Below, piece after piece: positions 13,873 to 63,028 of a DNA stretch of 64,000 nt. The stretch comes from Ruditapes philippinarum (Eukaryota). The DNA is taken from the NCBI RefSeq assembly GCF_026571515.1, contig NW_026862330.1, forward strand, positions 186,001-250,000, given 5' to 3'. The translations under genes and the position numbers were made by a program. Every line of letters starts with the position of its first letter. Position 1 is the stretch's first letter. The notes under the pieces were generated by a model that worked only from the letters and a program-made list of their open reading frames with translations, was not told where the DNA came from and did no database searches.

Positions 13873-16118
13873 TTACATTTTGCAACAGAAAAATCTGACA
13901 TCATTCAAGGCAGTATCATCACGGAATTTGCCTCGAGCTTTTTCCACTTTTGTCTGAATTCCACATACAGCTGTTCTATTCGGACATTGGTTGCTCCAAG
14001 CTCCCCATGTTCCCCATAGACCGTGTCCCGGGGGTTTGACAAGTTCGTACGTACGACCACCACGACACCGACACTTAAACTTTACATAGTTTGCAGCAGT
14101 GTCGTCCTTCATTCTACCCTAAAATTATGAATGTAAATATACAAAATGTATATCAATACGTAAATGTTCATATATAAATTAACAAATTTGCATAAGTTTA
14201 ACTGTCTAGTTTAAAAAAAAATAGACCCGAGGAAAATATAATTGTAGCTTTAAAATTAAAAGACTATATACATTTGTATGTTTAACATAAGAAAATCCCG
14301 TTTTAAAATCAGCGGCATAATGTATGTGAAAATAGAAATAGTCTCAGCTTCTTTAAAAGGAAAATCGTACTTGATATTTCTCTACTTGAAGATCAAAAGA
14401 GCTGAAGTAAAAATGCTTTCGGCATTTGGTTTGTCCGACCCAGGATCCCCATGGTCCCTCAGTAGACGTGACATAACCAGTAACTTTTCCATCCTGGTCC
14501 TCACAGATCAATTTGATGGCATTCAATGCAGTATTGTCTGTAAGCTGTTTAGGTTCAATCTGTAATTAATGGTTTTTATAGTCAGTTATCAAATATAAAT
14601 ACAAGGACCAACAGGCAAGGGCGGCACTCATTGAACCCATCCTCCAACATGACCATTGGCAAGGAGCTCAGCAGGACACCAAACAAAAACAGAAAAGGGT
14701 ACAATGGCAAAGCACGCACATGTGGTGATTATAAATTCAAAATAGGAAATCATAGAAACCGACAAGAATATGAGAGAAGGCAATTAATTCTTTAGACCAA
14801 CAAAAGGATAATGACGCGAAGGAAGGGGTGGAAATAAAGGAAAAAACACAAGAAGAATATAGCAATAAACATGACATACATCTGGGGAACAGCGCTGCCA
14901 TAAACCGCCAGCAGCATTACACTACATTAGCACTACTGAGAAGTTTTAAAGCAATTGATGGTGCCCAAACTAAACTGCAACATGTGCCTTTTAAACGAGA
15001 CAGCGTAAATGATCATATGAATACATATAAAAAGTAAACACAATAAACATAAACAAAACTACTCAATATCTTTAAGGAAGATAGAGCAGCACCTACAACG
15101 ACCCGACAAAGCAAGACAGAAGACAAAAATTAAAACGTTTCAAAACCAATGGGTTTTAAGAACTGTCTTTCACAATCTATCATTTGGTCCATCAAATATA
15201 ATCAATAGAGGAAATCTAAGTGTCCGACTGCACACTTAGCATATGGCATGTCTTAAATAGTAGAATTATTACCTCTTTTAATAATATTTTTAACAAGTTT
15301 AGAAAATACATCAGAAGTCTGTTTTGATCATCAATAATACGTGGCGATATTGATTAATATGACCTCCAAATAAACATAAGATAACAGGTATCAGTGTCCA
15401 CTTGAGAAATGCTTAAATCACAAAATTATTTAGCTTGCTCTACCTTCATGTCGTAACCGACGGCGAAAGATCCCTCCTGACAAAACTTTGCTGGTCCCCA
15501 TTTACCCCATGGACCCCCATTGTTCACTCGCAGCATTTCCACAAATCTAGCATCGACTAGAATAATCAGAAAATGTAATGGTATTAGTTTATTCAATCAT
15601 AACATTATGTTTTATCGTAATAAATTCCGTGAATAAAATAAAACATGAGTAGTACTTAATGTTTGGTATGTATGTGTTTTATTCTCCAAATAACTAGTAC
15701 TATTCTGTGCATTTTCACATCTCATCACTAATTCATTACCTTATATTTAAAGAAATAAATTCAGATATCATAAAATGGAAAAGATACTAACACACGCACA
15801 CATGCACACACGCACGCACGTGCACGCACACAAGTATTTCTAAGCAAAAATAATATAATAAAGCAAATAAAATATAAGAAAAGCGTAAAAAGAAAATTTC
15901 AATAGTTTTAGACTTTACATACCACCAGTTTCAGTGACTTCCGTTTCATCATAGTCTCTTGTAATATCATTTCCAGTCTCTAAATGATGGTTAACTGTCT
16001 CATCAGCAGGCATCTCGAATTCTCCCTCAATTCCATCTCTGACGCGGAAGAATCCCGCACAAAATATCTGACCGACAAGCATAAAGCCCACGAGAGTGCG
16101 GATTGATTTTATTACCAT
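13873..16118 (-). CDS. VMO1: VMO1-domain secreted protein, paralog 1, intact, ~247 aa. Exons 16118-15923, 15556-15444, 14559-14371, 14118-13873
   Basis: All introns GT-AG with consistent phases (1,0,0). Protein: signal peptide [22 protein letters not shown], acidic spacer, then NGGPWGKWG...FC...YDMKIEP...[12 protein letters not shown]...GPWGSW...[12 protein letters not shown]...[10 protein letters not shown]...CGIQTKVE...[13 protein letters not shown], the three-fold repeat of the VMO-I beta-prism domain. Confidence 0.93.
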
Positions 16119-17663
16119 TGTCGCTGCTTCGTAGAACGCAACGTTTGCAATCAAAAATGGGAAATGAAATTTGAAAATGTTCTTCACCGTTATCCTGCCC
16201 GGAAATGTGCACCGGCGCGTTAGATAAGCGTTGTAAACAGTTTGCGTCAATCATCAAGTGTTTCCGGTATTAATTAATCTTTCTCAATTTGGCTGATTGA
16301 ATCGAATTTGTATTATTAAAATATTATTTACATGGCAAGCTGAAAATATAAGTGCAACGAAAACAACAACAGCAACAACAACAACAACAACAACAACAAC
16401 AAGAAAGTACAGCACAAAAAAAATGAATTTAACACATTTTATTTTGGAATAAAACCACAAGTCTGTCATAAGAAATTAAAAGTTCGGTTATTTTTCCTTA
16501 ACAGAAATCATAAATATTAAACATGACATAAGTGGGTTTGATGCAAATTATGTAAACAATTGCATTCTAAACCCTGAATTTGTGTCGTAAATTTTCCTAA
16601 CGTTGAGTTTTGAATAACCCGGAGATTTACGACACTAGAGAACATTTGCTGCCAAAATATTTCAATGCAATATTGAGAAAAATGAACTAACATTTTTTCA
16701 AGAAAAGTTTTTAAATTTTTTAGAAAAGTAAAAATATACACAATTTAGGTGATGGTTTACATTAAATTTGCAATGAGGTGCTGAGTTTGCAGTATTCATC
16801 ACCGTATTTCTACTGCGTGACCAACACAGTATGGACTATTTTTGCGTATTTTGACCTTTATTTGGTTAAATACATGCCGTTTGCAAACTGTAAATTACAT
16901 TTCTTTGTTCACTTGACAATATTTTTTATATATATTTTCAACATTTTCATGAAACTGCTCTTTTAAGCGACACTTAAAATTTAATTATCATTGTGAGAAT
17001 GTTAGATGTACAATGATTTTATCGGGCGGAACCAGGATATGGATAATAATAACCATACTTCCTATTTCTTAAGCTACAAATATAAATTATTTTCATCATT
17101 ATGGGAAATCAATGAACTTCTTGCCTTTGCGCAATGTTTCAATTAAAATTATTAATATCGATTTAGCCTCGATTTCATTTTCCGAGTCTAAGAATAAATA
17201 TCAATCCATAATGTATTCCATCTAGTCTCGATTTCATTTTTTCGTGTAAAACGTCACGTTTAATTCATATTGAACTTGAACGATAAAATCTATATACATC
17301 ATGTACCTCAATATTAAATTAAAGTGGAGTGATATCATTGGCTGTATTAGAACATTAATATAATACAAAATCACTGTTAGTGTTTCCTTTAGTTGAACGT
17401 ACTAAAGTATTTTCTCCTAAAAAATATGGCGGTGTGAAATATAGAGTTTTTTAATATACATTTCTAATTCTATGTATTGATTTTACTGGACTAGTTCAAA
17501 GCTGAAAAACTTATATTGGCCTCGTCTGGTGCCTCGTCCAAAAAATGGTATTATAGCTGTGAAGTACAATATAATTATTTTTGTGCTAGACATTGTATTT
17601 TAACATCATCGTATTTATTATAATTATATCTATAAAGGCCTATACGTATACATCTTACGTTAA

Positions 17664-18309: not shown

Positions 18310-18620
18310 TTCACGATTTCAACTGCACGATTTCAGTTTCGTGAATTCACGATTTCAACTTCACTAATTCACGATTTCAACTTCATGAATTCAACACACA
18401 AATTCACAATTTTCAATTTCTCGTATTCAGTTGAAATCGTAAATTTGTGAAGTTTAAATCGGGAATTTGTGAAATCGAAATCGTAAATTCGTGAAGTTGA
18501 AATCGTGACTTTATGAAGTTGAAATCGTGAACTTTAGGAAGTTGAACTCGTGTACTTGTGAAGTTTAACTCGTGAATTCGTGAAGCTGTAAACGTGAATT
18601 CTTGACTTGAAGTTGAAATG
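18310..18620. repeat. 22-bp minisatellite foldback array, copy 1
   Basis: GAATTCACGATTTCAACTTCAC units followed by reverse-complement units. Confidence 0.85.
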
Positions 18621-18886
18621 TCCCCTCCGATCTTTCGTAACATTGTGATAATTATTTGTTATTGTTATTTTCGTGGAAAAAGAGAATATCTTAACTTGAT
18701 ATATAAGTATTTATATTTACTCTTCCGTTTGGTTGCAGGTCACAGTAAAAACAACACATCGTAAGAATTCAACATGTCCGACATCCTACAAATCTGAGAG
18801 ACGTTTTATTGAAAATTATCAAAAGTATTTATATATAAAGTATCAAAAGAAAATGTGACATATATAAAGTCGGACAAAATTCATCT

Positions 18887-21110
18887 TTAGTCACTAAGGC
18901 TATCTGAATTGCACGGCAGCTTACAGCAATAGAATGCGACGTCATTAAGAGCAGTATCATCTCCATGCCATTGGCATTTCTCTACTTTCGTCTGGATTCC
19001 ACAAATTCCTGATCCTTTAGGACATGTGTCGCTCCATGCGCCCCATTTTCCCCAAAGGCCGTGTCCTGGCGGTTTGACCAGTTCGTAGGCATGTCCACCA
19101 TGACACCGACACTTAAATTTCACGTAATTGGCTGCTGTGTCGTCCCCCCGTCCCTGTGTGAAACAAATTAAGATCACACTAAGGCAGTCTTGTAAATAAA
19201 TGTTTTGAATGATGGCTGAAGTAAATAAAACTGTGAGGCTCAAAATCAGCAAAACAACTGTGACTTGCTATAAATTCGTTTTCTTCAATANNNNNNNNNN
19301 NNNNNNNNNNNNNNNNNNNNNNNNNNNNNNNNNNNNNNNNNNNNNNNNNNNNNNNNNNNNNNNNNNNNNNNNNNNNNNNNNNNNNNNNNNNNNNNNNNNN
19401 NNNNNNNNNNNNNNNNNNNNNNNNNNNNNATAAATCAATAATAGATAAACNNNNNNNNNNNNNNNNNNNNNNNNNNNNNNNNNNNNNNNNNNNNNNNNNN
19501 NNNNNNNNNNNNNNNNNNNNNNNNNNNNNNNNNNNNNNNNNNNNNNNNNNNNNNNNNNNNNNNNNNNNNNNNNNNNNNNNNNNNNNNNNNNNNNNNNNNN
19601 NNNNNNNNNNNNNNNNNNNNNNNNTTTTTCTACTTGAAGATCGAACGCGGCAAGGTGTCTGTGCCCGTTACAATTTATTCGTCCTACCCAGGAACCCCAT
19701 CTGCCTTGTGTTGAAGTTACTTCACCGGTGTATTTTCCTCTTTCATTTGCACAGATTAGTTTGATCGCATTTAACGCAGTATTGTCGTTGTGTTCTAAGG
19801 GTTCGATCTGGATTTGTAAACACAATTTATTATTTATTCATATCATTATGATAAAGCTTCTTATGCTAACTTTTTAATATCATTTTAGTTCATTGTTGAC
19901 TCAAAACTGATCCCACAGGCATAAAATCTAAAAGCAATCTATAGATCTAAACTTGTATGACACATCTTAACTTGTACAAATGCATAAATGGAAGTCTAAA
20001 CGATTACAATGAAGTTCCACCATGCCAATTATTTAAAGGGAAACATAAATGAGAGTTTCAAATATCAAATATTTGTAATAAAAATGACAAGCCTGATGTC
20101 GTGCCTCAAATTCTAGAATTAGGCAAACATTATGAAAAATAAAGATAATATGTATAAATCTAAAATTAAAGTAATAGTTTTGAATACTGCAGCTTTACTA
20201 CTAAAAGAGCTCCTCCCTGGCCCAATGTCTAAAAACCATTAAATTAGACACAAGATGATAAATCAAGTTGGGGGAGACTAAAATAATGATAATGACATAG
20301 AGAAAAACAAATTCCCTAAGAACGTAGATACCGACAAAATTGAAAAAATGTTGCAGGCTCGGTTTGATCGAGCGTGTTCATGGGCAGTAATGGTAAGTGC
20401 AAGTTACCGTCCACGGCCCCCTTGCACCGGCTCAAGCAGAATTCAACATTTAAACATGAAAATGGTAAGATGTTTAATTTAGAAACACCCGCAAATGTGT
20501 TTATAAAACAAAGAATTTAATCTTACTTTCATGTCATAGCCAACAGCATACGAATCACCAGGACAGAACTTGATATTCCCCCATGTACCCCAAGGTCCTC
20601 CATTATTTACTCTCAATATTTTGGTCCACAGCCTATAAGTCTCTGTTTAAACAAAATTTTTAAATTTTGAAATGTATTCTCAAGTAAGACAAATTTTTTT
20701 TTACATAAATAAATAAATAAATAAATAAATAAATGAAAGATATATCACACACGAATTACTTACCTATCAGGTTTATATTCTAGTATATTGTACATTTTTT
20801 TATTTTACGTTTAAATCATAATTTTAATTAAAATAAAAACGCAGCTGAAGAACTAACATAAGTCTTTCTCTTCTAAATAATGATAAAAATCATGATTTGA
20901 CAATTTCATTACCTGAGCTGTCGTCTGCTTTTGATTCTTCTATGAAGCCGTCTTCACCATCACTAGTGTTACTATCATCATCAGGTATCTGAAATTCTTT
21001 CACACCTTCAGTCACTCAGTCGGTTCGAATCCTCTATCTACACCACATAGCGCTCGGCCTACAAGAAAAATAACGGTAAATAAGAAAATTTCTCGCATTA
21101 CGACGCCCAT
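18887..21110 (-). pseudogene. VMO1: VMO1-domain paralog 2, frameshifted in exon 1. Exons 21110-20913, 20642-20527, 19807-~19619 (end in N gap), 19153-18887
   Basis: Close copy of paralog 3, but an 8-bp insertion (21014-21021) gives TGA at codon 33 (21014-21012). Exons 2-4 are open with intact VMO1 motifs. Exon 3 donor is hidden in the N-run. AATAAA on the minus strand at 18805-18810. Confidence 0.8.
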
Positions 21111-21732
21111 GTTCTTGAAGATCCTGTGCAAAACTGTGAAGTTACAAGAAGGGTTGAGCTTTTATAAGGCTTCGGGAACGTATATTAAACCATATCCGTT
21201 TCACAAATTGTGCGAGGATCATCAAATTTGAAATTTTATTGATATATTTATTGATAAACCATATATTGTTTCCGCAATATAACATATGCACGCATTTCCT
21301 ACTATTGTTTGATTTGAAACACTTACTTGTTATCGGTAGGTCAGAAACTTCAAGATATACTAGAGTAATATTTCGGTAACATTTACATTCAAAAACTATA
21401 TTCTATTCTTCTGGGCATCGTTTCATAGAAAGTTCTAAGTAATATCCTGAGTCCTAGGCCTTATGAGCAACTATTGCACTGACTTAAGACCGTTTCAATA
21501 AATATTTTGATCTTTAGTCGATGACTTGGAATTTAGTTAATTTCACCCCCTCTTAGAAAAGATAAGAGATACATTGAACACATGCTTCAAACCATAATTT
21601 GTTCATGCTTATCTACATGACAATTCAGAAATTGAAAAAAGTATTAACATAGGAGTCATAAGTTAGTATATTTTCTTTGTAGCACCAAACTGTCTCAGTT
21701 TTAGTCTAAAGACTAATTTTAGACTGAGGACT

Positions 21733-22840
21733 AACAATTGCTGTTGCTTAATGTTGTGCAACAATAGCTGTTGCTTGATATTGTGTAACAATATCTGTTG
21801 CTTAATGTTGTGTAACAATAGCTGTTGCTTAATGTTGTGTAACAATAGCTGTTGTTTAATGTTGTGTAACAATATCTGTTGCTAAATGTTGTGTAACAAT
21901 TGCTGTTGCTTAATGTTGTGTAACAATAGCTGTTGTTCAATGTTGTGTAACAATATCTGTTGCTAAATGTTGTGTAACAATTGCTGTTGCTTAATGTTGT
22001 GTAACAATATCTGTTGCTTAATGTTGTGTAACAATTGCTGTTGCTTAATGTTGTGTAACAATATCTGTTGCTTAATGTTGTGTAACAATTGCTGTTGCTT
22101 AATGTTGTGTAACAATAGCTGTTGTTTAATGTTGTGTAACAATATCTGTTGCTAAATGTTGTGTAACAATTGCTGTTGCTTAATGTTGTGTAACAATATC
22201 TGTTGCTTAATGTTGTGTAACAATTGCTGTTGCTTAATGTTGTGTAACAATATCTGTTGCTTAATGTTGTGTAACAATTGCTGTTGCTTAATGTTGTGTA
22301 ACAATATCTGTTGCTTAATGTTGTGTAACAATTGCTGTTGCTTAATGTTGTGTAACAATAGCTGTTGTTCAATGTTGTGTAACAATATCTGTTGCTAAAT
22401 GTTGTGTAACAATTGCTGTTGCTTAATGTTGTGTAACAATATCTGTTGCTTAATGTTGTGTAACAATTGCTGTTGCTTAATGTTGTGTAACAATAGCTGT
22501 TGTTTAATGTTGTGTAACAATATATGTTGCTAAATGTTGTGTAACAGTAGCTGTTGCTTTATGCCATGTAACATTAGCTGGTGCTTAATATGTGGTAACA
22601 CTATCTGTTGTTTTATATACGGTTACGTTAGTTGTTGCTTTATGTATGGTGACAATAGCTGTTGCTTAATATATGGAAACAATAGTTGCTGCTTTATTTA
22701 TCGTAACAATAGCTGTAGCTTTATATATGTGGTACCTATAGCTGTAGTCTTATTTATGGTAAATAATAGCCTTTACTTTATATATGGTAACAATAGTTGT
22801 AGCTTTATATACTGCAACAATAACTGTTGCTTTAAACATG
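21733..22840. repeat. 27-bp minisatellite AACAATAGCTGTTGCTTAATGTTGTGT, ~40 units, degenerate at the right end
   Basis: Direct reading; it generates the spurious CCLMLCNN, LLHNIKQQ and CYTTLSN ORFs. Confidence 0.95.
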
Positions 22841-23962
22841 TTAAGAATAGCCGTGAAGGAGTTTGAACTTTGATGTAATTCACATGATCAAACTATAAAC
22901 TTATGTGGACAATAACAGATAAAATATCGACCGGAAACACATTTGTCGATAATTACTTTTATCCGGACTATTATCACAATTTGTATGCAGGCGCAACTTT
23001 ACATACAGTTATGTCTTTCGGTTGCTTTATGGCAAACAAACGCATGCAAAATATCAACGAAGTGTGACTTTTCTTGAGAATGTAACAGGCGTTCCTACTA
23101 GCCAATCGAAATGAAAATGCTACCGTTGTAGATAGTTATATTTTCCTCGTGTTGGCCATATGACACCTGAAATTGGCACTGTGTCACAATATATTGGCTA
23201 CATGTAGAGTACAGAAATGATTTTTTTGCGCGAGCAAAATCAAAACTCCATATGTTAAAATACTGTATAAAAATGTTGCCATATGTTAATCACAGTGAAA
23301 CTTTCCCATTTTTCCGCATAACCTAATTTCATTGTACGGGTATAGAAAAGTAATTGAAAAAAGTGAAATGTCATCAATATCCCATTCTTTCTTAAGTAAC
23401 CTAGGTAACATATTGCAGGAATTTGGTTTATTCATAAAAACCACAAACATGTAATGACAAATTATACTGTAACCCGTAACATAGGATTAGCAAATGGTCA
23501 TTGCGTGCGTGAATGGATAAATTACAAGAGCCAATTATTATTCCTTGTTTGGAGATACTGAATAAAAGTTTATAAAAATATTTGAAAATAGCTTAATCAG
23601 TGAAAGTTAATATGTAACAGTTCATATAGCTTGTGAATCCGAAAGAAGAAAAGAAAAGTCAACTCCTCGATTCGTGAGGTACGAAATAACGGGACGATCT
23701 TAATTTTGTTATAATCAGAACAGATTTTTTTTAAAAAAGTAGCGTTAAATAAAAGTGAAAGTTTGGATACTATCATGGATATGTATAAATATATTGTATT
23801 TACCTCTGGAATATTGCTGTTTCTCCACGTTGATGTGACGTACACGTTGACGTTAGGTGATATGAAGTGTCAGGTAGGCCCGTACCTATATCCTGCAGGA
23901 AAGAATAGAATAGAATAACTTATATTTCAAATCAAGGGTCATGTTAAATGACATGTTAATCA

Positions 23963-23963
23963 C

Positions 23964-24011
<48 letters not shown>
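23963..24011. repeat. (AAT)n microsatellite
   Basis: About 16 units. Confidence 0.95.
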
Positions 24012-24014
<3 letters not shown>

Positions 24015-24189
24015 ATCAAAGATCAAATACAGACGTTAAAGAAACTAAAACTTTGTATTATAGTAACAACAATGAACTTTTAGAAAAACAAACACAGTAA
24101 ATGGCAGAGTTTCGCAAACTAGCATTAAACATCATAATTATATATATATATAATAATATATATATCAAGAGGATATCTTTTGTTTGATT

Positions 24190-24302
24190 GAAATATGGAA
24201 TATATTTTCACGAAACATGATAAAATGCCACATATTTTCACGGACGGCGAGTGAAAATATGTGGCATTTTATCATGTTTCGTGAAAATATATACCATATT
24301 TC
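24190..24302. mobile_element. Near-perfect hairpin (52-bp arms, 9-nt loop), MITE-like, in intron 1 of gene A
   Basis: GAAATATGG...CACATATTTTCAC-ggacggcga-GTGAAAATATGTG...CCATATTTC. Confidence 0.75.
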
Positions 24303-26299
24303 ACGAAAAACGAAAAAATAACCTTTTTATTTAATTTTATTATCAAAGAAAAATAGTTACGAATCCCATTGCTTGCTACGCAACTGCAATTGGACCTTTC
24401 CGATGTTTACAGTTTTATGTAAATTGGCTGACTTGTTATCCAATCGCTACACTGAGATAATAAATAGTCACTGGTTGAACTGGTTTGCACAAAAGAACAC
24501 GTGTTTATGTTTGTGATACTGTTTGTGAGCAGTTGACCTAACAATGAATGGAATAGGTGTGTCTAAATGTTCCGCTACGAAAAACCGGAAAGGTCCTAGA
24601 TGCGTCTTGTTTTGCACGAGATATTTGGCGGTACATTGTGACGTCACGTAAACAACTCTTTAAACATTGGTGTTCGTATTTATTTTCTTAGTTAGACCAT
24701 TTTCTATCCTTTTAGATAGTTTTCAAAATTCAACAAAAAGTTGTTTTGTATTTATCAGATATTTCAAACAAATGGCGAAAGAAGTCCCTTAAAATAAATA
24801 CCGGTATGAGTTTTGACTCCGCCCACTTTCATATTTATATTTCATATTTATTTTCAAAAAATATGAAATATATTTAACTGATATAGCACCATATTTCATG
24901 GGTAAAATTAAATAAATATATGAATTAATAATGACATTATGTTTTTATAATCATTTCGAATAACATTCAATTTACACAAAAAGTTAGCCTATACCTGTAG
25001 TATAACTACACCGTACAATACACATGTCCCCCAAAAACACAAATACTAAGTTAAATCAATGTATGGTTTCTTATTATCATTTCTGAGTTTAAAACAAGTA
25101 AAAATAAATTCTACAAATTGTTTTATGATTTTTTCATCTTCGTTGCTCATTAACCAAATGAATTTGCTTATTTCAGACATTTTTAAAAAGTTTAAATTCT
25201 TATCTTTTATTTCATCACATAAAATGCTGCGTTGACTAGTAAGTCTGCAGAAACCCTTGGACTTATTAAAGTACTCACCCTGTGGGCTCTTGCTTTCAAT
25301 GTGTCCTTGTGCTTCTGCAGATGTGAATGCACAAAACAAAGCAAGGTGGACTATTAAGCTATTCGATACTGAGGGAGGTCTTGATGAATACATTAAATTT
25401 TGTATTTGACAATTTGATATGCAACTGACAATATAAATTGTTATTTTTCCAACCTTTTTAGGAGAATTTATGAACCCAGAAGATGCATGCAGTGTATGTG
25501 ACTGCATGGATGATGGTAGCTATGACTGTCGGTCAGTGTGCTTGAAACCACCATGTGGAACTGACCTGTACAGGAATGATACAAACTACCCCACGTGTGG
25601 TTGTAAAGTGTGTTCGAACATCTGTCAAAATATAAATCCACCGTGTGGAGAGCTCACATGTCCAACATTGAATCATTACTACGAACCAAACGAATGTTGC
25701 CCTGAATGTCGTTGCTGGTATGAAGGCGTAATGGTACCAAGAGGTAAATATTCTTAACCTTTCTTATGAAGAAGGACATCAGAAGCGTGCTTTACACGAG
25801 AGGTGTTCAATTTATTATGAAATACAATCAAAATACTTTATAAGATCTTATAGCTTATAAAAACTAGTGCAAATCGATTAATTTATGTAAAGTAGTGTAT
25901 CATACATATACCCATCTCATTTGATTTCAAAATTCAATATAGTTAGACCAAAAATAAATGATTAAGTTCAGGGCACTATTTTAAGACTTTTGAAGCAAAA
26001 TAATATTATATCCTACAGAAACATTGTGAAATAAGCAAAACAGATGGGATATAATATTTCTGCTGCTTTTGTGTATCGCATTCAACATGGTAAAGGTGCT
26101 TTTCGAAATGACATACACAAAACAGGTTAAAATGGTTCTTTTACCAAACGTCGCACAGCAGCTACTGCTGACGTCGTACGTAAAATCTGTAATTTGAATG
26201 CCTGGTGAAGCCTCTAACACAAAGACAAATAGCAGCTTAGTGTGTGGTGTCTCTAGGCAATATCAATAAAGTTATAGCCAAACTTCTAAAAGCAGAACT

Positions 26300-26950
26300 C
26301 AGTTCATTGGCTTAGTGAGGCCCAGGTTTTGAAACTTCGAGCTTGGTCATGGCGTCTATATCTCGGCCCTAACTGTGAAAAATAGTAAGATATTGTCACC
26401 ACAGATGAGGATATGTTTTATATGGGCGGTAGTTACGGTCGACGTCGTGTTTGCTACGTTCGTACTTTTGTTCGTACATTTGCACCTGGATGTATGGTTT
26501 GGGTCGGAGTTAGTTACTTCGGCAAGACATATCTAATTTTCAAAAATAAAGGGGTAAAAGTAAATGCAAAATATTTAATAAACAAAGTTTTTAAGCTATT
26601 TCTAAAAGAAGATGTTCTGCAACCTTTTTCCCGGAAGAATAAATGCTATGGTATTCTAGCAAGACTCGGCCTCTAGTAATATCGTCAAAAATGACCATTA
26701 CCTTTCTCAACACATGCAAATTGAATTACAAAACACATGCAGAATGGATGCCAAAAAGCCCAGATGCAGCTCCCATGGACTTTGGTATCTAGGGTATACT
26801 GAAACGCAGGTTACAGAAACGCAAGATTAATTGTATGTCCGTTTTTAAAAGGCTCTTAAAGAAGAATGGAGCAAACTTGAGCAGTCATGCATAAACCGGA
26901 CTTTAGAAAGCTAGACAAAAAGGTGTAGAATGATTTACTATTGCCATGAA
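26300..26950 (+). mobile_element. Decayed Tc1/mariner DD37D (maT-type) transposase in intron 2 of gene A
   Basis: IVTTDE, MVWVGVS...GKT.LIF...GVKVNAKY, QDSASS and WMPKSPDAAPMDF.I*GILK motifs; 37 residues between the 2nd and 3rd Asp after correcting one 1-nt frameshift. Confidence 0.8.
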
Positions 26951-28739
26951 TCCTAGATTAAACATCTGTTGCAATAAAACACATGCGAGTAAATTATTAG
27001 GCAGGTTTTAAAACTGTCCATGTAATAATTTAAACACCTTTCCTTTTTTTCTGGAATGTTTGTATAATGTAAGACTATTTATGTATAATAATTTTGCTAC
27101 CAAAAGCATGTTTTTAGTTTAGATATGCATTTAATAAACTGAGGAAGTATACCTGTTCCGATCATGCTTGTTAAGTTGGCGTTCGCTAGCAGATCATCAG
27201 TTTTGTGTTCGAATCAGCACTCATCTTGAGGTTAATCTTCACATTTATACATAGTAATACATCTATAACACTTAGATTTGAAATCACACACAAAAACTAA
27301 AACAAAAACAAAAAACAAAAAAAACAAAAAAACAAAAAAAACAACAAACAAACAAAGAAACAATAAAAAAAACGTGTACAAATGACATTCAAGGCTATGG
27401 ACACTTTTGTTTTATTTAGTTGATTTTAATTTAGAGAAATGGACTGTACGACATAAGATGAAATTGTGCATATTTCAGGACGTTTCGGTCCCGCATGTGA
27501 TAACTGTAGATGCAAAGCGAATATGGAAGTGATATGTGATCGACCAGCTTGTCCTGCCGTAAAACTTAAATGTGTAGATGCAACGTTTGACAAAGATTGT
27601 AATTATATTTGTCCAAACGGTAAGTATAGCTGACATATGTATGTATAGTTAAAGTGATGTTTCACGTGACTTTGCGTGCAGTTCATATATTATACATTGT
27701 GGAAGTGTTTTTGAAGAAGTTAATGTTATTTGTTTTAATAAATCATTATTAATAATAAAAGCGGTGGCTGAACTGCTCTGGTACATTCAATGTGGTTTAC
27801 TGTCGCGGTCCGGAGTAAAAAATACCACCACCACCACCAGCTAATTGTTAATACTACATGTATTTTTTCTTGTTTAAATTCATCCTAGGTAAAACATGCA
27901 GCCAAGGACCTCATGTCATAAAATACGGAGAGTTCAAGAAGATAGGGAATAAAGTGTGCATGTGCGTTGGATCCGATTGGTACCCTCATGCTTTTTGTGC
28001 TAAACCAATGCAGTTAGGAGACGATTTCAAGAAGTTGATGAGAAGAAGATGTGTTGATAATCCTTCAACATTTCCTACGTGGAAAGAGATAGCAGCACTT
28101 TAGAAATGACATTAAAATGCATTATTTTACATGATCTGATGTGTAAACTTTTTATCTTAAATAGATCATCACAAATATAAACGTATTTGTTTTTCAATTT
28201 AAGCAACCCGTTTGTTTTCATATTCTATAACCATGTAAAGCTTACATGACGTTTTCTTTCTGCTATATGTTTATATATGACCCTAACATACGCCAGAGAG
28301 AAATAAAATTTGGCACGAAATTGTCTAAATCATCGGGAAACATTTCAATACTGAGTGTCTTACTCTCAGAGTGTTCATTACACATTCAATTTAGACATCA
28401 AGGAAGATAACTAGAGCAACAAATTTGTCTAGTCATGATGTATTACTTACCTTTATTATCTATTAAGATAAACACATGTATGAAAGAAATAATCAATTAA
28501 GTTTAATTAAGATGCCTTTTATTTCCGTCCCTGATGAAAGTGGACATTGCGTGTTAATTCAAAACAAACAAAACCGTTAAGGAATTTTATTTTCTTGCTC
28601 AAACAAATAATCATGGTGACAGTCTACCCTGTGTTGTTAATGTTAATAAACAAAACCAATTTCGAAAATTCTAAATGACAAAAGAGAAATATGCTACTAC
28701 GATGACGATGAGAATATGGTGAAGAAGATGTATTATAAC

Positions 28740-33653: not shown

Positions 33654-33688
<35 letters not shown>

Positions 33689-44945: not shown

Positions 44946-44954
44946 TACGTTATC

Positions 44955-46004: not shown

Positions 46005-46038
<34 letters not shown>

Positions 46039-46345: not shown

Positions 46346-49300
46346 TGTCTTTTGGAACCACCTGAAAAATGTGAATAAACTATGAATGCTCATCATCATC
46401 ATCTCGAGTAATCGCAGTCCTCCTGCAGGAGTATTCTCGCGATACGTGCTTTCCGCGATTCATGCTTAATGGAAACATATTACATTTTGTGAATAAGTTT
46501 GTATGCATCTACCTGTAAAGATCATGCAGTGACTGACAGAATAAATAATTATAAAATAAGAAGATTCTCCACTTTTTCTTAATATTTTAAATGACTTTAT
46601 TTGATATCTTATGAATACAAATGTAACTTAATTTGATATTTAAATAATTTTTGAAACCAAACGCACAATGACGTTACTTTATGTCAAAAATAGCTTTTGG
46701 GACATTTTCGCTAGACTTAGAAATATTATCACTTATAGCAGGTAAATAATGATACCAAAATGAAATTTGGTCAGCATACACAGCAGAAAAACGCTATTAT
46801 TTAGAATAAATTTGAAATAAAATGTTTCATTGCTAAAACTATTTTATTCGATAAATGTTAAGGTGAATGACGCGATTAAACGCATTATTTCCAATTTTGG
46901 CCATTTCCGCTAGACATAAATATTTGCTCATAATTTACAAACTATATATATTATTTTCTAACAAAAACAGGAAAAGAAACAATTTGAAAACGCATTTTTG
47001 AAAATCTAAAAATGATCTCAAAATTAAGTTAAATATAAGGTAAACATTCATTTAAAATTTCTTACCCGTCATTCTTTAAACACAATTCTTGTATCTCTAC
47101 ACAAATTTCTCATTCACGAAATCTTCATTTTTCTCCGCACTTTTCAAACGTTAACGTTAATTCAAATGACATCATCTGCGTAAATGATGACGTCAACGTC
47201 AGTATGAATTTTAAAACGTTTTGGCGCCAGTTTCTGGCAAAATGTAAGTATAATCTTCTGTTGCTCAGACATTTTCGTTACATCTCTACATGCGATTTTG
47301 GTATCGTTTGATGTTGTATTTTGCTATGACAAAATTCTGCATCAATGAACGGCGAATCATAATGATAAAAATTTTGTCAGGTGAAAATTTTCCTTTATTT
47401 TGATATATAATTTTTATTATTTTATAAAATAGTTCCTGGAAAAACAACACTTCAAGATATTGTACTACAGCAAAAAGTGCAGTTTGCCCAATGATCTGAC
47501 GTCGCGTCTTAACAATTTCCATTAGTTTTAGTGGAAATGTTGCAGTCAATGCTAAGTATGTAATTTATCTCTTAAGTGAAAACGTACATACGTGTACGGA
47601 TATCTCGACTTTATAAGGACCTGCGTGTAATCCACAAACAATATGGGGACCGAAACCTAATATAGTGGGCTGACACGTCCGTCCTTATGTTGAGGTTGTC
47701 CCTATTTTAGTATATTTTTCTCTCTTCAGGAGCGGCATGTCGTAAATGAACAAGAAACAGTAGTGGCGTGCCATAATTGAACATGTAGCGGTATGAGAGC
47801 GCCATAATTGAATTATGTAACAGCTGATTGTTTTCAGGAATGAAAACTTGCGTATATAAAACAAGCTCCCTTTATATTCCCATGCTGTTGCATTTATGTC
47901 AATGGTTGTCAATTATATATGTCTACTTACTTATTGTACGTTACGTATAACAATCCCATTTCAGGCGTGAATCAACTGCAATGTCGAAAAATATTATGAT
48001 CATAATTTTTGCACAGTTTTTTAACATTAATCAAAAATTGATGTAAGGTTATGTGCTTGTAGATATATTGTACATTGATTAAAATACTAGCGGTTGATTC
48101 TGCTGAAATAGGAATTCAATTGATTTTAACATTGATTGAAACTGACAAAAAATTGGCTTTGCCACAGTGTATTAACAAGTATACTTCATGTACCGCAAGT
48201 GAAGAATAAAGTTAACATATATAAGCTCCTAACAAAAGTACGTTTAGTGACCGGAAGTAACATGTGCTTTACTTCGCAAAATATGGCACACAATGAATTG
48301 TATAGGTACAGAATTCCGTTTATCTATGTTTTAAGTACATGTTAACTAAACACTTACACGACTTCACCTATAATATAAACATAACATACGTACATAGATA
48401 TGTTTTAATATATTTAGTTTAATGATTTGCTAAGCAAAACACACTATAATAAAGAAAGTAAAGACAAATATTTCATACAAACAAAAGAATAGTACTGTAA
48501 CTAGCAAATGAATACATGTTTTTTGTAAAGCGTATTAAATTGGAAGTAAAGTCATTATATAGTTTCATGTCAGACAAAAATATCAATACACGTATATTCC
48601 AACAAGCTTTTATGTTGCGTTCATTAGAACGCCGCCTTTCCTTGTTGATTTTGTTTACCATATTTTATATTAATTGAGGTCACTCAACCGAACTTTTGTC
48701 TATATACATACTTTTCTTTGAGCCTTAATTTGTAACATATGTAAAATATAGAATATACACACACAAATAAAAGCGCAATGAGATGTAGTGTTGGGTGTTG
48801 GACCGTATATGTCTTTACATTTTGTAATTAGATTAAGTAATCAGTCGTAAAAAAATGATGCATTACTGACCAAAAAGTAAATAGAGCAACGATTCACATT
48901 GTTTGTAGAAATATATACACTGTAAAAATGGTTACACAGATGGCCTTTATAACAAATAACATCAAATGTTAAACAACCACGAGTTTTTTTCCTATATTTA
49001 GAACCCATTATGTTTTCCAGCAATGCTTAAAACTATTATTTATGGAAAAATTCAATAAAAAATATAAATAATGCAGATATTATATATGATAACGCAGAAA
49101 AGAGATATAAATAATGTAGACAAAAATATAAATGATGCAGAATAGTGAAAACAAGAAATTTTTATAATGAAGTCAGAAATATATTTGATGCAGCGAGAGA
49201 TATGAAAACAACAGATATAAGTAATGCATACAGAAATATAAATGATGCAGACATAGATAATGTAGACAAGAAATATATATGTTGAAGACATAGATATAGT

Positions 49301-49563
49301 TAATGCAGACCGGAATATAAATAATGAAGACACAGATATATAATGAGTTCTTAACGATTGAAAAGGCGGCATTTGAAACTGAACTTGTGATTCTGAACTG
49401 TTACTATATTTTAATGAGCTTATAACTTAAACTCATTAATTACACAAAGCACTTGGCAGATGATGAAAAAAAGGGTGATGTGATTTTTGATGAATCATGT
49501 ACGAAACTATATGTGGCTGATGTGGATATATTTAAGAAAGCGACTAAGGTTGATAATCATTAG

Positions 49564-55327
<5,764 letters not shown>

Positions 55328-57114
55328 GAAACTGTGACGGAACTAAATTTTAAATGTTGTTATTTATTAGCAATAAATGTATCGAAGCATTTCTGTTATC
55401 TTGAATATTAATGATAGTTTGTACATGCACATATAAATCTTTTTATCAGTATCCGATGACTTCTGGTAACTTGAATAACATTCTGTAAAGAGAATACTAT
55501 AATTGAATACGGTAAAAGTTAATAGCCTATACATTAATAACGTGGAAAAAACACACAACAACAACAACAACAACAACAACAAAACAAACAACTAAACAAT
55601 CGTTAGATATAACAATTTACGCGGCTCACAGTTTGCTGAGTGTAAAAAGCTTGAAAATTTGCAATAATTTTAGTGGGCCGAATGCTTGGCATGTACTTGT
55701 TCTCCCTGTAATTTTGTATTTAGGTGCGAACGAACATATTTCTACTGACATCTCGGCAATATAAAGGCCTGCGTGTAATCCACAAATAATATGGGAACCG
55801 AAGCAAAATTTTGTGAGCTCTTACGTCCGTCTCTTTGATGATAAGAGGTTCTTAGTGGTGTGTCCTTTTTTTGAGTTAATTTCTCTTTCTGTCTGCAAAC
55901 TTTTCAGGAGTGGCGTGCCATGAATGAACATGAAACAATAGTGGCGTGCCATAATTAAACATAAAGCAGTATGGGCGTGCGATAATTATGTAACAGCTGA
56001 CATTTTTTTCAGCAATGAAACATACATAATTTGAACTTGCATATATAAAACAAGATCTTTTTATATTCCCATGCTGTTGCATTTATGTCAATGGTTGTCA
56101 ATATATGTCCACATACTCAGTAACGATTTGCCATCCCCTTTCAGGCGTGAAACAACTGCAACGTCAAGAATTTATTATGATAATAATTTTTGCAAAGTCT
56201 TTTTACATTGAACAAGAATTGATGTCTCTGTTGAAAATTCCATTCCTATAGAAATGCAATGGATTTTAACATTGATCAAAACTGAAAAATGGCTTTGCCT
56301 TATATATAGATAAAAAAAACCTATTTTTTACAAGTATACTTTATGTATCGCAGGAAAAAATCAAGTTAACATAAATAGGCTCCTAACAAAAGTATGTACA
56401 GAGACCGAAGGTAACATTTGCTAGAAAAACATGATATAGGCTCACAAGAAAGGGTAATTTTTTTAAATGTATGAGAGATGTACATATACATGTTTTAACA
56501 TAAGTCAACAATACACAATATTAGAAAGAAAGTATTAATAGATATTTCAGATAAACAAAAGAGTATAGATTCGTGGTAACTGTAAAGCGTATTAATTCGA
56601 AGTTTAGTCATTATATAGTTTCATGAAAAGATTCAACGTCATAAACTAAAATATCAATTCTTTCCCATAAGCTTTTATATAAATGGAGGTCGCTCAACCG
56701 AAATACTGTCTTTAGACAAACTTTTCTTGGAGCCCGTTTATGTAACATATGTAAGAAATAAAATATATACAAAAACAAGTGCGCACCGAGTTGTATTGTG
56801 GGGTGTCGGACCGTATATATCTTTACATTTAGTTATTCGATTAAATAATCAGTCGTAAAACAATCAATATACTGCTTACCAACAGTTTATTCTCTACAGT
56901 AAGTTAAATAAAGCATCAATTTACATTTTTGTTAAAAATAACAAAATAATTTATACCGCAGTTAAAAATGGTAAAACAGATGTGATATCAAATGTTTAAC
57001 AACCACGAGATTTTCTCTATATTTAGAACCCATTATGTTTTCATGCATTGCTATTGAATGAAACTAAAGTTTATGAATAAAAAAAACTTACACCAGACCG
57101 GGGGGTTCTTCATT

Positions 57115-57820
57115 CAGGAAAAAATATAAATGATGCAGACAAAAAATGTAAAATGCAAACAGAAATATAAATAATGCAGCCAAAAAAATGTATAATGCAA
57201 ACAGAAATATAAATGATGTAGACAAGAAGTATAATAATGCAGACGAGAAGTATTAGAAATACAGTAAAGAAATATAAATTATGCAGATATAGATAAAATA
57301 ATATAAATAAGAAATATAAATGATGAAGACAGAAATATAAATAATGCAGCGAGAGGTATAAATAATGTAGACAGAAATATAACTAATGTAGACAAGAAAT
57401 ATACATAATGCAGACAGAAATATAAATAATGCAGCCAGAGATATAAATAATGTAGACAGAAATATAACTAATGTAGACAAGAAATATAAATAATGCAGAC
57501 AGAAATATAAATAATGCAACCAGAGATATAAATAATGTAGACAGAAATATAACTAATGTAGACAAGAAATATAACTAATGTAGACAAGAAATATAAATAA
57601 TGCAGACAGAAATATAAATCATGCAGCCAGAGATATAAATAATGTAGACAGAAATATAACTAATGTAGACAAGAAATATAAATAATGCAGACAGAAATAT
57701 AAATTATGCAACCAGAGATATAAATAATGTAGACAGAAATATAACTAATGTAGACAAGAAATATAACTGATGTAGACAAGAAATATAAATAATGCAGACC
57801 GAAATATAAATGATGCAGCC
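57115..57820. repeat. 21/22-bp minisatellite GACAGAAATATAAATAATGCA; shorter degenerate counterpart at 49060-49345
   Basis: Direct reading. Confidence 0.9.
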
Positions 57821-58680
57821 CAGCAATCAGTTTGTATCAATATGGCGGAATACTTCTAATTGGTCAAGTAAAACTTTGTTTGATTATTTTTCTAATTGTC
57901 CACTTGCTCAATAGGAAGCACGTCGGATTCGTAATCTGGGGGTCGCCGGGTTGATCCTCGATTATATTTTTTCCCATATTTACTTTAATGGTTCCTTGTC
58001 TTTCACGACTGATCATGGAAAGGATAAGTTAGTTATACAGGAAAGTTTGTAAAGTGGACCCACCTCTATGATATTTGGAATCGGCATAAAAACAAGCAAA
58101 CTTACATGATCATTTAGAAATATAACGCCAATTTTGTATTTAATCAGATTTTATGTTAAGATGATATATTATGTGTATAAATATATAGATGATTTGCTAG
58201 ACACGAAGAACTTTACTAATACAACCTAATCAAAGTTATCAAATCTATAATAGTGAGATTTTAGAACTTTCTGCAAATGGGATGAAAACATAAAAACATT
58301 GGTGAGAAAAATATCAGATTTTATGTTTATGTGAACGTATTGTAAGAAAATTTTATTAATTTATATTAATATAAATGAGTGCTAAATTATTGAAAAATCG
58401 ACCTTTGAAACTGGAGATTATGTACTGGTATATTCTTATTTTACAAAATTATTAATTAACATGTTTATTACACAAACCGCTTGGCAGATTAAAAAACAAC
58501 AAAACAAAACGTCATGGTACATGGAAACTATCAAAAACGTTAAATATTGAAAAAATCCAGGGTGATGTGAATTTTGATGAATCATGTACGCATCTTTATG
58601 TGTTTGATGTTGATATATTTAAGAACGTGGCTTAGGTTGATTATCATTACTTTAATGTGTTTTACCCTCATTGGTACAGA

Positions 58681-61600
58681 ATGAGGGTAATTTTCATCTT
58701 GGTATTCTTTGCCGTCCTGGCGAGTGTTACTTATGCAGGGAAGGGAAGCATGTCTGAATCTGACAGCGGAAGCTCCACACGGACTAGTACGGGTACAGGT
58801 AAAGGGACCGGAACAGGCACTGGTGTAGATGGGAAAAGCGGTACAGGAACGGGCACAGGAACCGGTACATTTACTTTCACCCACTCTGATACTGGTAGCG
58901 GAACTTCTAAACCATCAAGCGCAAGTAAATCAAGTGAATCAAAGAGCAAAACGAGTAGCAAAAAGAGTAGCAAAAAGAATAGCAAAAAGAGTGGCAAAGG
59001 GTCCGGTCCAAGCCCTCCTGTGTATCATTGTATAAAAGACGGTATACGATATAGTGGTAAGCACACACTTCTTCTCTACTACCTATAATGTTTAACTCGG
59101 TATTAATATGTAAAACTTTAAGAATTATACTTGATGGGATGTCTTATTAAAAATATAACAAAGAATAATATTGCAAATTCATCACATTTCAACTGAAATT
59201 TCCGCCACTTGTCATTGGCCATATAGCCAAACCACCTTTTGCTCTCTTTTTTTGGCAATAAGTGCAGTTATAACTGGTTTAGTACTCTATATGAAAGTCA
59301 AGATATAATGTTGTCTACGTTGTGCTACCTTTATAGCAAGTTAATTCACAATCAATGCTCCTTATTTAGGTGATAATCATTTGAAATATGTCTTAAATCA
59401 ATTATAAAAACATTACTCAACATTTATCGTTTGATAGGAACATGGCTTGTTGGATTTTTTTTTATAAAATTATAAATACACCTTTTTAAGCCAAACATTT
59501 GCTTTTATATTCAAGTTAATTCATATTTTTTCGCTAAACATGCAATCGAGTGTGCCAGATATTTCTAAACTTAATAGGTTTATACCGCGATACAAAAGAA
59601 AATAACTTAATATTTTCAATGTACATTTTCAATTAGGTCTTTCAAAACATATTTATTATTAGTAATAAAGAATTTCAGCAAGTTACATGACGGCACTGGA
59701 AATATTTTTCCGAGATTTGACAAAGGTTTTGGCCAAAAACTTGTGCGCCAGTTGTCAGATAATTCCTTCACATCGATTTTCCAGGAATTTTAAGTGTGCA
59801 AAATGACACAGTTCGCTCAAATCGGACTAAGAATCGCCAAAAAATAATAATTAAATAAAATAGAAATTAAAATATAAAATTTATGATAATAACCATAAAA
59901 TCGATATTCAATTTAACACTAGGTATATTTTTGTCTTCCAATGCAAGGTTTTTGTATTAAGTGCTTCACTTAATAAAGTATGATAATCAATCATATACCA
60001 GAAAAAGCAATAAAAATCAAAATCAATTTTTTTTAAAACAAAAAAAAAAACAGGAATAGTTTAGTGTACATGTTTTAAGCAAAAAGCAAAATGAAGCTGG
60101 CGATATTTTTTTGCTCTTGCTGGTGTCGCGTTTGGTATTTTTACAACATACTTCAGTCACTTACTAAAACGAAGAAATGTATTTTATTTCATATTTGGTT
60201 TTGTTTACCAATTAGGCCAAAATAGGCTAAAACGTCATATCATGTCACATATATTAGATGTTCTCATATTGGCGGTAATCCATGTTCGGTTCTTGTCGTA
60301 GGTCAGAGGTCATCTAAAACTGGTGAATAGTTATAGGGTGTATCTGCATCAGTAAGACCAAAGATTATTAAAAAATGTATTCACATTAACGGTTAATATA
60401 AATTTCTTTGTAATCGGCGAGGTGCTCCAAATGAGTTATTACACCGTGCCGTAAGAATTGAATGGTTGTGGAAAGTGCAGTGCTAAATATACATGGAAGT
60501 AAATAGCAGAGTTGTTCTGAATCTAGTGGTTCGTTTCTTTTTTTTTAAACACAAACTTTGGATAATATTTTTTAAACGCATTCAAGTCATTTAAAAACAG
60601 CAATAACTGTGTTTCAATAACTCAACGTGATTCCTTTGGGAAAGAGATAATTGTTTAATAACCAAACGCGATTCCTTTGGGAAAAACGGTGCAAAATTCC
60701 TATAGCAAATCAGAATAAATGTCTGGTGTAAGTTTGGAAACGGAAACATACTTATGATCTTCATTTACAACCTTTTATTTTACCAATATCATCAGAGCAT
60801 TTGATTTCATTGCTATTCGACATATTTAACCAATTTGGCACCGTATCTGATGGAATGACGTATGATTTTCTGTTTCAGGAGTATTTGCTGATCCATTCAA
60901 CCCATGTAAAGTTTGCATGTGTTGCAAACCTGGAATCTATACGTGCACCATAAGATAATGTCTAAAACCAAAGTGTTGTGAAAAAATACAAACACTGGAT
61001 TCCAATGGCTGTTGTATGAAATGTCCAAAAATTTGTAAAAAAGAATGGAAGAAATGTCCGAAACTTAATTGTCCAAAGAGGCGTTATGCATATGGAGAAA
61101 CGGCCTGTTGTCCGTCTTGTGGATGTGTTAACTTTCCCAGTAATGCACCCCCAGGTAATTTATTATTTGTTACAGTAAGTATTTGGAAAAAAATTCAAAA
61201 TCAAGATGATCATTGTTATTTTTCAATGTCTAAGCTTGAAAAACGTCCTCATTTGGAAAAGTCAAAAACCAAAATTGAGTATACTAAATAAAATAAGCTA
61301 AGTAAAGTTATTCTTCGTGATATCTTCGCAATATAATATGATAAACGATTTAGCACAATCGTAATTAACACATAAATATAGAATTGAAAATATCAAATTA
61401 ATTACGGTTCATTTACATATATTTAAAACTGTTGAAACCACTTTTATATTTGTAGGCAAATTTGGAGATGAGTGTGCGAAGTGCGAGTGTAATCCCGGAG
61501 GTCCCCCATATAATGGGGATGGAGTAATTACCTGCAACCGTCCACCATGCCCTGACAATAAACTGGAATGTGTTGACCCTAAATTTAACAAAAAGTGTGA

Positions 61601-63028
61601 ATATAAATGCCCTCAAGGTGAGTGTTCTTTCAGTAACCACACACACGATACAAAATGACTCTAACACTATAAAGCAATTAACAAATGTGATGGTCCGAAA
61701 ACTAAAGTAAAAGCCATGTTTGACCAATTTCATTCCTAGATATGTGTTCATAAACAAAAATCATTTTTACTATGCAAATTTAAAGCGACCTTAAAATTTT
61801 TTGTAAAGGTAAAACATGTTATTTTTAGATAAATCGTTTCATATAGTCAAATCAAAAGAATTAAAGTGGGAAATGAAATTGATGAAATACAAAAACAATA
61901 AGGGAACCCCTCGATACCTTTAACATACCGGTCTGCTTTCTATATTTAATAAAGTGAAGAGAACGATTCATTTTCAGATTTTTTAGAATCGAACATTGAC
62001 GCGTTATAAATACTCTCGGACGCTGTTTTGAAGAAGGCTAAACAGTAATATGCTTCATTTTCCAAAATAAAAGTACTGAAATACTTGGTTTGAAACGACA
62101 CAAAATTGTTTTTTCAACAGAAATCAAAAGCTGAAGGCCGCTTTAATGAGCTATTAAAAGTGTTTATGAAATGAAGGGATTGTGTTTTTAATAAATTACA
62201 CGTTGTTATCATGTATTTAATTATTCACCTTAAGAATCAGTCAACAATAGTCATTTAGAATTCCAAAAGAGAGTTGAAAGGATGGTAACATAAACCGAGT
62301 TAAATACATTTATTGTTTTAAAATAAACAAATCATTTCGTATATAAGTTTATTCACTTGAAGACTAGTACACAAAGTGTGCAAGTATATGATAACTTTAG
62401 GCCAAAAAATGAATAGTTATCTATACGAAAGTGAATTTTTAACATTATGCTCTTGTTTTTTTCAGGGCCAACATGTAGAAGAGGAGATCTGATAATCAAG
62501 AAAGGTAAGCCGCAACTTTTAGGCGATAAAATTTGTGTTTGTGAAAGAAACTTTTACCCACGTGCGTTCTGTGTGACTGCGAATCCGTTCGAACGAAAAA
62601 TAAAGAAGTTAATAGATCATAAATGCGTTGCCACGATAGAAGAACAAAAGAAAAAGTTTCATAAAGGAAAAGCCAAAGAGCCGGACAGTGGCGTAAGCAG
62701 TGCAGGAAAGGGAAGTGGAAAGGGTAAAGGCTCTTCAAGCAAGAAAAGTAAAAGTTCGGGCAAAATGAGCGGAAAGTCTTCTAGCAAAAAGAGTAAAACT
62801 TCGAGCAAAAAGGGTGGAAAGTCATCAAGCAAAAAGAGTAAAAGTTCGAGCAAAAAGTCATCTAGCAAAAATAGTAAAGGTTCGAGCAAAAAGAGCGGAA
62901 AGTCATCAAGCAAAAAGAGTAAAAGTTCGAGCAAAAAGAGCGGAAAGTCATCAAGCAAAAAGAGTAAAAGTTCGAGCAATAAGTCATCCGGCAAAATCTC
63001 GGGAAGTAAAGGCAGTAACAAAAGTTAG
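58681..63028 (+). pseudogene. Secreted VWC-domain protein D with Ser/Lys-rich tail, paralog of C, with an in-frame stop in exon 2. Exons 58681-59056, 60879-61154, 61456-61617, 62466-63028
   Basis: Same signal peptide and exon structure as C. AAA>TAA at 60956-60958. Splice sites all intact. AATAAA at 63183-63188. Could be a null allele or be rescued by skipping exon 2. Confidence 0.75.

Follow-up and report, generated by a model that had tools for sequence, protein, structure and literature searches.

A tandem cluster of VMO1 and VWC-like genes in Ruditapes philippinarum whose two families are probably neighbours by descent

The window analysed here, a 64,000-nucleotide stretch of Ruditapes philippinarum DNA that is AT-rich (G+C 33%) and contains three runs of N, carries seven genes from two families. 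Three, all on the minus strand, are VMO1 genes, and the other four, all on the plus strand, are VWC-like. The VWC-like set consists of two short genes (a1 and a2) and two repeat-bearing genes (c1 and c2). The locus is likely to be a lineage-specific tandem cluster of two unrelated secreted families, which has grown by segmental duplication and been pruned by pseudogenisation, and in which the two families are neighbours by descent. All seven genes begin with a hydrophobic stretch resembling a signal peptide (judged by eye). VMO1-A, VMO1-C, a2 and c1 are intact, and the remaining three genes carry lesions, namely an 8-bp insertion in VMO1-B, the loss of a splice donor in a1, and an in-frame TAA in c2. 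The original prediction for this DNA had described seven genes of two secreted families, three of them lesioned, shaped by tandem duplication and birth-and-death. Coordinates, gene models and family searches bore out the gene content, the count of three lesioned genes held, the signal-like N-termini support the secreted character, and self-alignment together with the lesions supports the proposed history.

Repeat layout was read from six-frame segments compared all-against-all and from a self-alignment of the DNA (self-blastn), and tandem repeats were located with Tandem Repeats Finder (TRF). Window exons were searched singly, and database orthologues or RefSeq remnants (P0001, P0121, P0147) stand in for whole proteins. 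The lesions were read from a single draft assembly that contains gaps. The seven genes, in window coordinates, are the following.

13873-16118, minus strand: VMO1-A, four exons (15918-16118, about 15438-15556, 14371-14559 and 13873-14118), reading intact in splice sites and translation
18887-21110, minus strand: VMO1-B, four exons, lesioned; exon 3 at 19625-19807
23775-28103, plus strand: a1, exons 23775-23898, 25462-25743, 27479-27619 and 27889-28103; exon 1 donor lost
33040-34918, minus strand: VMO1-C, four exons, intact, with signal peptide, acidic N-terminal tail and VOMI domain
38323-42270, plus strand: a2, four exons, intact, about 253 amino acids
49594-55327, plus strand: c1, four exons, intact, about 547 amino acids
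58681-63028, plus strand: c2, four exons, in-frame TAA at 60956-60958 in exon 2

Self-blastn revealed two kinds of tandem unit and a satellite that borders the larger of them.

18559-30946 and 32703-44394: tandemly repeated unit of about 14.1 kb; its two copies are 80-87% identical, and each has one VMO1 gene (minus strand) and one VWC-like a gene (plus strand)
47559-55239 and 55707-62979: tandemly repeated unit of about 8 kb; its two copies are 69-83% identical, and each has one c gene and no VMO1 gene
18326-18600, 32552-32664 and 44497-44944: 22-bp satellite at all three borders of the 14-kb units

The age of these duplications was estimated from synonymous divergence (dS), and the selective regime from the ratio of nonsynonymous to synonymous divergence (dN/dS), both summed over exons that were compared one at a time. 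VMO1-B and VMO1-C differ by a dS of 0.11 (dN/dS 0.56), and a1 and a2 by a dS of 0.09 (dN/dS 0.26). The equally low dS of both genes in the 14-kb unit indicates that VMO1 and the a gene were copied together, once. The pair c1/c2 is more divergent (dS 0.15-0.30, dN/dS 0.41-0.43), and dS is saturated between the a and c types. It is also saturated between VMO1-A and either of the other VMO1 genes, to which VMO1-A is 68-70% identical at the amino acid level, identifying it as an old paralogue. In tblastn searches, VMO1-A was without a neighbouring VWC exon, and neither c1 nor c2 was accompanied by a VOMI exon. Since VMO1-A has no VWC partner and the c genes were duplicated without VMO1, co-duplication of the two families was a single event and says little about function. 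The families had been predicted to be interleaved and co-duplicated; that pattern exists, but it rests on one 14-kb block duplication and not on repeated co-duplication.

In our reconstruction, the ancestral locus comprised a VMO1 gene of the long kind, encoding a signal peptide, an acidic tail and a beta-prism VOMI domain, placed head to head with a small four-module VWC-like gene. An older split gave rise to the a and c types, of which the c type gained Gly-Thr and Ser/Thr/Lys arrays. The c gene itself was duplicated separately from the 14-kb unit, and earlier; one of the resulting copies now has a stop codon. The satellite-bordered 14-kb unit was duplicated once in tandem, and both genes of its first copy were disabled later. 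The 22-bp satellite shared by all three borders suggests unequal exchange between arrays, and the copies may accordingly be products of unequal crossing-over between satellite arrays. The array at 44497-44944 is partly palindromic and aligns with its own reverse complement.

One good copy is kept of each duplicated pair, and the first 14-kb unit is damaged in both of its genes. In exon 1 of VMO1-B, an 8-bp insertion near 21013, relative to VMO1-C, causes a frameshift that leads to a TGA just after the signal peptide. Exon 3 of the same gene is in frame up to base 19625, the edge of an N run into which its last codons and donor fall.

19291-19624: two runs of N, separated by an island of 21 bases, that take up the last part of exon 3 and a portion of intron 3 of VMO1-B

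The flanks of this gap are colinear with 33463-33719 of VMO1-C (334 positions against 257 bp), so that order and orientation are consistent across it. In VMO1-C, the corresponding 257 bp comprise the final two codons of exon 3, its donor and a microsatellite of ATAA units. The last exon of VMO1-B is 100% identical to the R. philippinarum RefSeq protein P0001 (XP_060558385), a match that assigns the window to this species; P0001 is a 153-residue model that covers exons 3 and 4 only and is a truncated remnant of VMO1-B. In a1, the exon 1 donor is GA instead of GT. This indicates a rearrangement breakpoint at the donor, because similarity to a2 ends at exactly that base. In c2, the TAA stands opposite a Lys codon of c1, and the RefSeq model P0121 (XP_060558370, named "nucleolar protein 56-like") starts only after it and is likewise a truncated remnant.

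The same features bear on whether the copies are real. The units might be uncollapsed haplotypes or mis-joins around gaps, in which case the true number of genes would be smaller. The assembly is a draft with N runs inside the cluster, and sequence that is a mosaic of c1 and c2 exists elsewhere: the 1-kb metagenome contig P0116 (JGI), compared with window positions 53188-53502 and 60959-61288, combines an exon 2 identical to that of c1 with read-through into intron sequence that matches c2. However, the units differ by 13-20% in their DNA, with dS of about 0.1-0.3, much more than alleles would show; lesions and repeat lengths are particular to each copy; and RefSeq holds separate models for copies (P0001, P0121). 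We therefore regard an assembly artefact as very improbable. The mosaic contig itself suggests gene conversion or copy-number variation in another sample, so that the copy structure, and perhaps the c2 stop codon, would vary between individuals; this stop may be polymorphic.

Assignment of the VMO1 genes was straightforward. They share a four-exon plan, in which exon 1 encodes the hydrophobic signal-like start and an acidic tail, and exons 2, 3 and 4 encode one VOMI repeat unit each; introns 2 and 3, which flank exon 3, are in phase 0. Scores of the VOMI-domain exons against Pfam VOMI (PF03762) were 25.8-77.4 bits, above the cut-off of 25 bits. Exons 2-4 reached 29, 51 and 77.4 bits in VMO1-A and 26.1, 48.9 and 76.2 bits in VMO1-C, and in both genes they span profile positions 2-34, 25-95 and 95-167, a full-length family match. 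For VMO1-B, exons 2 and 4 exceeded the cut-off, and exon 3 matched that of VMO1-C at 83% (tblastn). Exons 2, 3 and 4 also cross-match in tblastn around G-x-W-G-x-W and D-D-T-A motifs, as expected for three internally homologous units. Like VMO-I, the clam genes encode a full VOMI domain of three repeated Greek-key units, one per exon, with conserved cysteines and DDTALN-type motifs, and their products are predicted to be secreted. They differ from VMO-I in that exon 1 adds an acidic tail, 40-50 residues long, at the N-terminus. This tail is common to the Mercenaria proteins P0176, P0184 and P0178, whereas shorter bivalve VMO1 genes lack it; exon 1 of VMO1-C is 48% identical to P0178 (E 7e-13).

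The VWC-like genes have four exons each, with all introns in phase 1 and GT-AG borders, except for the exon 1 donor of a1. The a type encodes about 253 residues. In c1, exon 1 encodes the signal peptide followed by Gly-Thr repeats and a stretch rich in Ser and Lys, the VWC-like core spans exons 1-4, and the C-terminus carries seven 15-residue Ser/Thr/Lys repeats with a 45-bp period. The repeat arrays of c2 are shorter and richer in Lys. The C-terminal 45-bp arrays of c1 (54998-55306) and c2 (62735-62983) are homologous but separately homogenised; the former is Ser/Thr/Pro-rich and the latter Lys/Ser-rich, which fits concerted evolution within each gene. All four genes also have a minisatellite 0.3-1 kb upstream of the start codon, with a 27-bp unit in the a genes (21732-22832, 36194-37379) and a 21-bp unit in the c genes (49103-49340, 57122-57818); the two units look unrelated. 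Frames in intron 2 of a1 (26389-26673) and a2 (40595-40972) resemble, by eye, a decayed transposase of the Tc1/mariner type, with no Pfam match.

A VWC domain was less readily recognized from sequence. The VWC-like exons of the window scored 14.2-18.6 bits against Pfam VWC (PF00093), below its gathering cut-off of 27.6 bits, to some extent because the first module is divided by intron 1. Several relatives passed the cut-off (P0122, 28.0; P0118, 39.6; P0119, 39.8; P0117, 61.8 bits), and P0147 (25.2 bits) and P0148 (24.7 bits) fell just under it. Read across exons 1 and 2, the first module of c1 has the ten-cysteine VWC pattern (CxxCxC, CCxxC); a1 and a2 have CxC in place of the CC pair. Some cysteines are missing from modules 2-4, which are shortened or altered VWC derivatives. 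The AlphaFold model of the Mercenaria orthologue P0147, used as a stand-in for a window protein and based on a shallow alignment, has a predicted local distance difference test score (pLDDT) of 80-90 over residues 40-140 (mean 61.8). With this model, the best Foldseek matches were the VWC domain of collagen IIA and VWC repeats of NELL; for collagen IIA, the probability was 1.00, the template modelling (TM) score 0.59-0.63 and the root-mean-square deviation 2.9-3.2 A, although the E-values were only 0.02-0.03. A PDB sequence search with P0147 gave nothing significant.

Relatives were sought with a profile of the four exon 2 peptides against 1.84 billion representatives, which returned 24 proteins at E<=0.001. 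The named matches are all molluscan (Ruditapes, Mercenaria, Mya, Mactra and Dreissena, with weak matches in Biomphalaria) and mostly from heterodont bivalves. A word-index search with P0147 returned its own isoform alone. The window genes appear to form a narrow family with a VWC fold. The predicted assignments to VMO1 and VWC were supported at the domain level, but the label "brorin-like" was not supported: in addition to the molluscan range of the named matches, the brorin-type profile VWC2L_2nd gave 11.8 bits (E 0.3) against a cut-off of 27, and so no specific brorin/VWC2 signal. "Brorin-like" is the automatic RefSeq name of P0147.

Comparison with better known proteins places the family more precisely. 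P0147 (M. mercenaria XP_045169207, "VWC2-like / brorin-like") shares four-module layout and length with a1 and a2 and is the best match of the a type; it is the best orthologue of a2, with 57-63% identity in exon 3, depending on the extent of the match, and 58% in exon 4. P0148 (M. mercenaria XP_045162279, "kielin/chordin-like") has the same layout and length and best matches the c-type core. Unlike c1 and c2, neither Mercenaria protein has repeat arrays, and their names, being automatic, imply no tested function. Cores joined to low-complexity regions, as in c1 and c2, are found in Mactra antiquata KAL4222213 (P0118) and in the Mya arenaria "HMU-like" proteins P0115 and P0119. These regions are long and Ser/Lys-, Pro/Thr- or Ser/Gly/Asn-rich; there, however, the core is repeated two to seven times, and the repeat chemistry is species-specific. 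The first module of c1 shares the ten-cysteine pattern with vertebrate brorin (VWC2) and the chordin-type VWC modules that bind bone morphogenetic proteins (BMPs), but the clam proteins differ from brorin in lacking any orthology signal and in having modules 2-4 truncated or altered. Arthropod single-VWC (SVWC/Vago type) proteins are likewise small, secreted, cysteine-rich, VWC-derived proteins of invertebrates and are discussed as immune factors (PMC5854119). They have one eight-cysteine domain, compared to about four modules in the clam proteins, and no sequence relationship was detected between the two.

The products of the locus would all be exported. VMO1 would contribute a module of the carbohydrate-binding type, the a proteins would be compact, disulfide-knotted modules, and the c proteins would be mucin-like polymers, probably O-glycosylated, that share this VWC-like core. 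These expectations raise the question of whether the two families act together. According to the original prediction, both families contribute to a single secreted structure such as an egg coat, mucus, an adhesive or a shell matrix, with VMO1 recognising glycans and the repeat-bearing VWC proteins serving as scaffold. On this reading VMO1 would bind the glycans of the c proteins, and co-regulation would keep the genes linked. The Thr/Ser-rich arrays of the c proteins suit O-glycosylation, and lectins have the same beta-prism fold as VOMI (PMC8878817). At the locus, VMO1 and the a gene were duplicated as a head-to-head pair, for which a shared function is possible. Nevertheless, the pair accounts for only one independent duplication event, and neither VMO1-A nor the c1/c2 duplication repeats the association. 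Moreover, the start codons within a unit are 3.4 kb apart (34918 and 38323), and the spacers are partly repetitive.

21732-22832: minisatellite with about 41 copies of a 27-bp unit, in the spacer that separates VMO1-B from a1
36194-37379: 27-bp minisatellite in the spacer between VMO1-C and a2, about 1.2 kb of its 3.4 kb

A spacer of 3.4 kb with a 1.2-kb minisatellite is not a compact bidirectional promoter.

Linkage in other bivalves was compared at the level of the chromosome or contig that carries each homologue. An alignment-based search found the long VMO1 subfamily in Mercenaria, where exon 1 matches exon 1 of copies B and C. The 82,432,825-bp chromosome carries three of the long forms (P0176, P0184 and P0177, the last of which differs at its N-terminus), and the 76,376,716-bp chromosome two (P0259, P0178); the remaining VMO1 genes of Mercenaria are spread over five other chromosomes. 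Three VWC-like homologues were found in Mercenaria, P0147 and P0136 on the former chromosome and P0148 on the latter. In Mactra, by contrast, the long VMO1 gene P0189 and the VWC-like gene P0118 are on different chromosomes, and in Ruditapes itself a second VWC-like gene, P0150, is on a contig without any listed VMO1 gene. At the chromosome level the outcome for conserved linkage is therefore mixed, since the two families share chromosomes in Mercenaria, twice, but not in Mactra. In a quick tree, the window VMO1 genes (represented by P0001) fell into a clade (support 89) with the long Mercenaria forms, and this clade also takes in some shorter Mercenaria and Ruditapes VMO1 genes on other chromosomes. 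The order of RefSeq accessions was rejected as a stand-in for distance: the gaps (15 numbers between the Ruditapes c2 and VMO1-B models, at least 356 between Mercenaria VMO1 and VWC models) hint at non-adjacency in Mercenaria but are too unreliable to score.

Three points weigh against neighbourhood by descent alone or against the history as we read it. First, the Mercenaria VMO1 genes with the exon 1 signature are on exactly the two chromosomes that hold all three VWC-like homologues found. Mercenaria has 19 chromosomes, and an exact two-for-two coincidence would arise by chance in about 1 of 171 cases. This co-occurrence fits an old, perhaps maintained, association, although conserved macrosynteny predicts it equally, without a functional tie. 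Second, head-to-head orientation could allow shared regulation. Third, some lesions could be assembly errors or polymorphic, given the single gapped draft assembly.

Taking linkage, duplication and spacer together with the published literature that was searched, which gave no expression or proteomic link between the families, we consider a joint secreted structure unlikely. A more specific version is a long shot: long VMO1 genes with the acidic tail and the VWC-like genes specific to heterodonts would be an ancient head-to-head pair, kept in venerids by co-expression and building one glycoprotein layer (oocyte envelope or jelly coat, mantle or gill mucus), with VMO1 cross-linking O-glycans on the Gly-Thr and Ser/Thr arrays of the c type.

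It is somewhat more conceivable, but still doubtful, that both families are humoral immune or defence effectors, with a lectin-like VMO1 and a cysteine-rich VWC protein comparable to arthropod single-VWC proteins, acting independently and evolving fast under pathogen pressure. Tandem birth-and-death, lineage restriction and intermediate dN/dS values (0.26-0.56) would be in line with such a role. All of these dN/dS values are below 1, however, and are inflated by decaying copies, with no sign of positive selection. The published literature searched contains no study of these clam genes or of a linkage between VMO1 and VWC genes, and for VMO1 only transcript lists. In one of these, Mercenaria VMO1 is among the immune-type genes with higher transcript levels in hemolymph hemocytes (PMC8902148), but this transcript may not be orthologous to the window genes, and a surfclam study groups VMO1 with reproduction genes instead (PMC10869415). 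The VOMI fold has been noted as lectin-like (PMC8878817). For VWC-repeat proteins of shell proteomes, among them a multi-VWC protein of unknown role in oyster, a possible immune role has been discussed (PMC5854119).

Elsewhere the window holds further repeats and putative remnants of mobile elements. No Pfam family was found for twelve other long open reading frames (ORFs), comprising remnants that resemble transposable elements, a 264-residue ORF (45133-45924), and ORFs in minisatellites and repeat arrays. Open frames inside minisatellites were treated as repeat artefacts.

12620-13436: 167-bp tandem repeat, 4.9 copies, 94% identity, just upstream of the cluster
31353-31988, minus strand: suspected by eye to be the reverse transcriptase tail of a long interspersed nuclear element (LINE), in the spacer between the 14-kb units; no Pfam match
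43625-43807: N run, intergenic, 3' of a2; the matching stretch in the other 14-kb unit is 1.2 kb, so the gap size is uncertain
44886-45924, minus strand: the 264-residue ORF, Lys/Arg-rich and with an ATG, and an adjoining 109-residue frame, between the a2 unit and c1; possibly part of a mobile element

With regard to its wider meaning, the locus is an ordinary birth-and-death cluster of secreted proteins, and it illustrates how two unrelated families can come to appear interleaved through the single duplication of a block with satellite at its borders. The analysis also flags two misleading automatic names, "brorin-like" and "nucleolar protein 56-like", and documents a VWC-derived family that is mostly heterodont bivalve among its named matches and has mucin-like offshoots. 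If the two families did cooperate, the locus would offer a practical way into the make-up of a bivalve extracellular coat and would provide a first function for an invertebrate VMO1.

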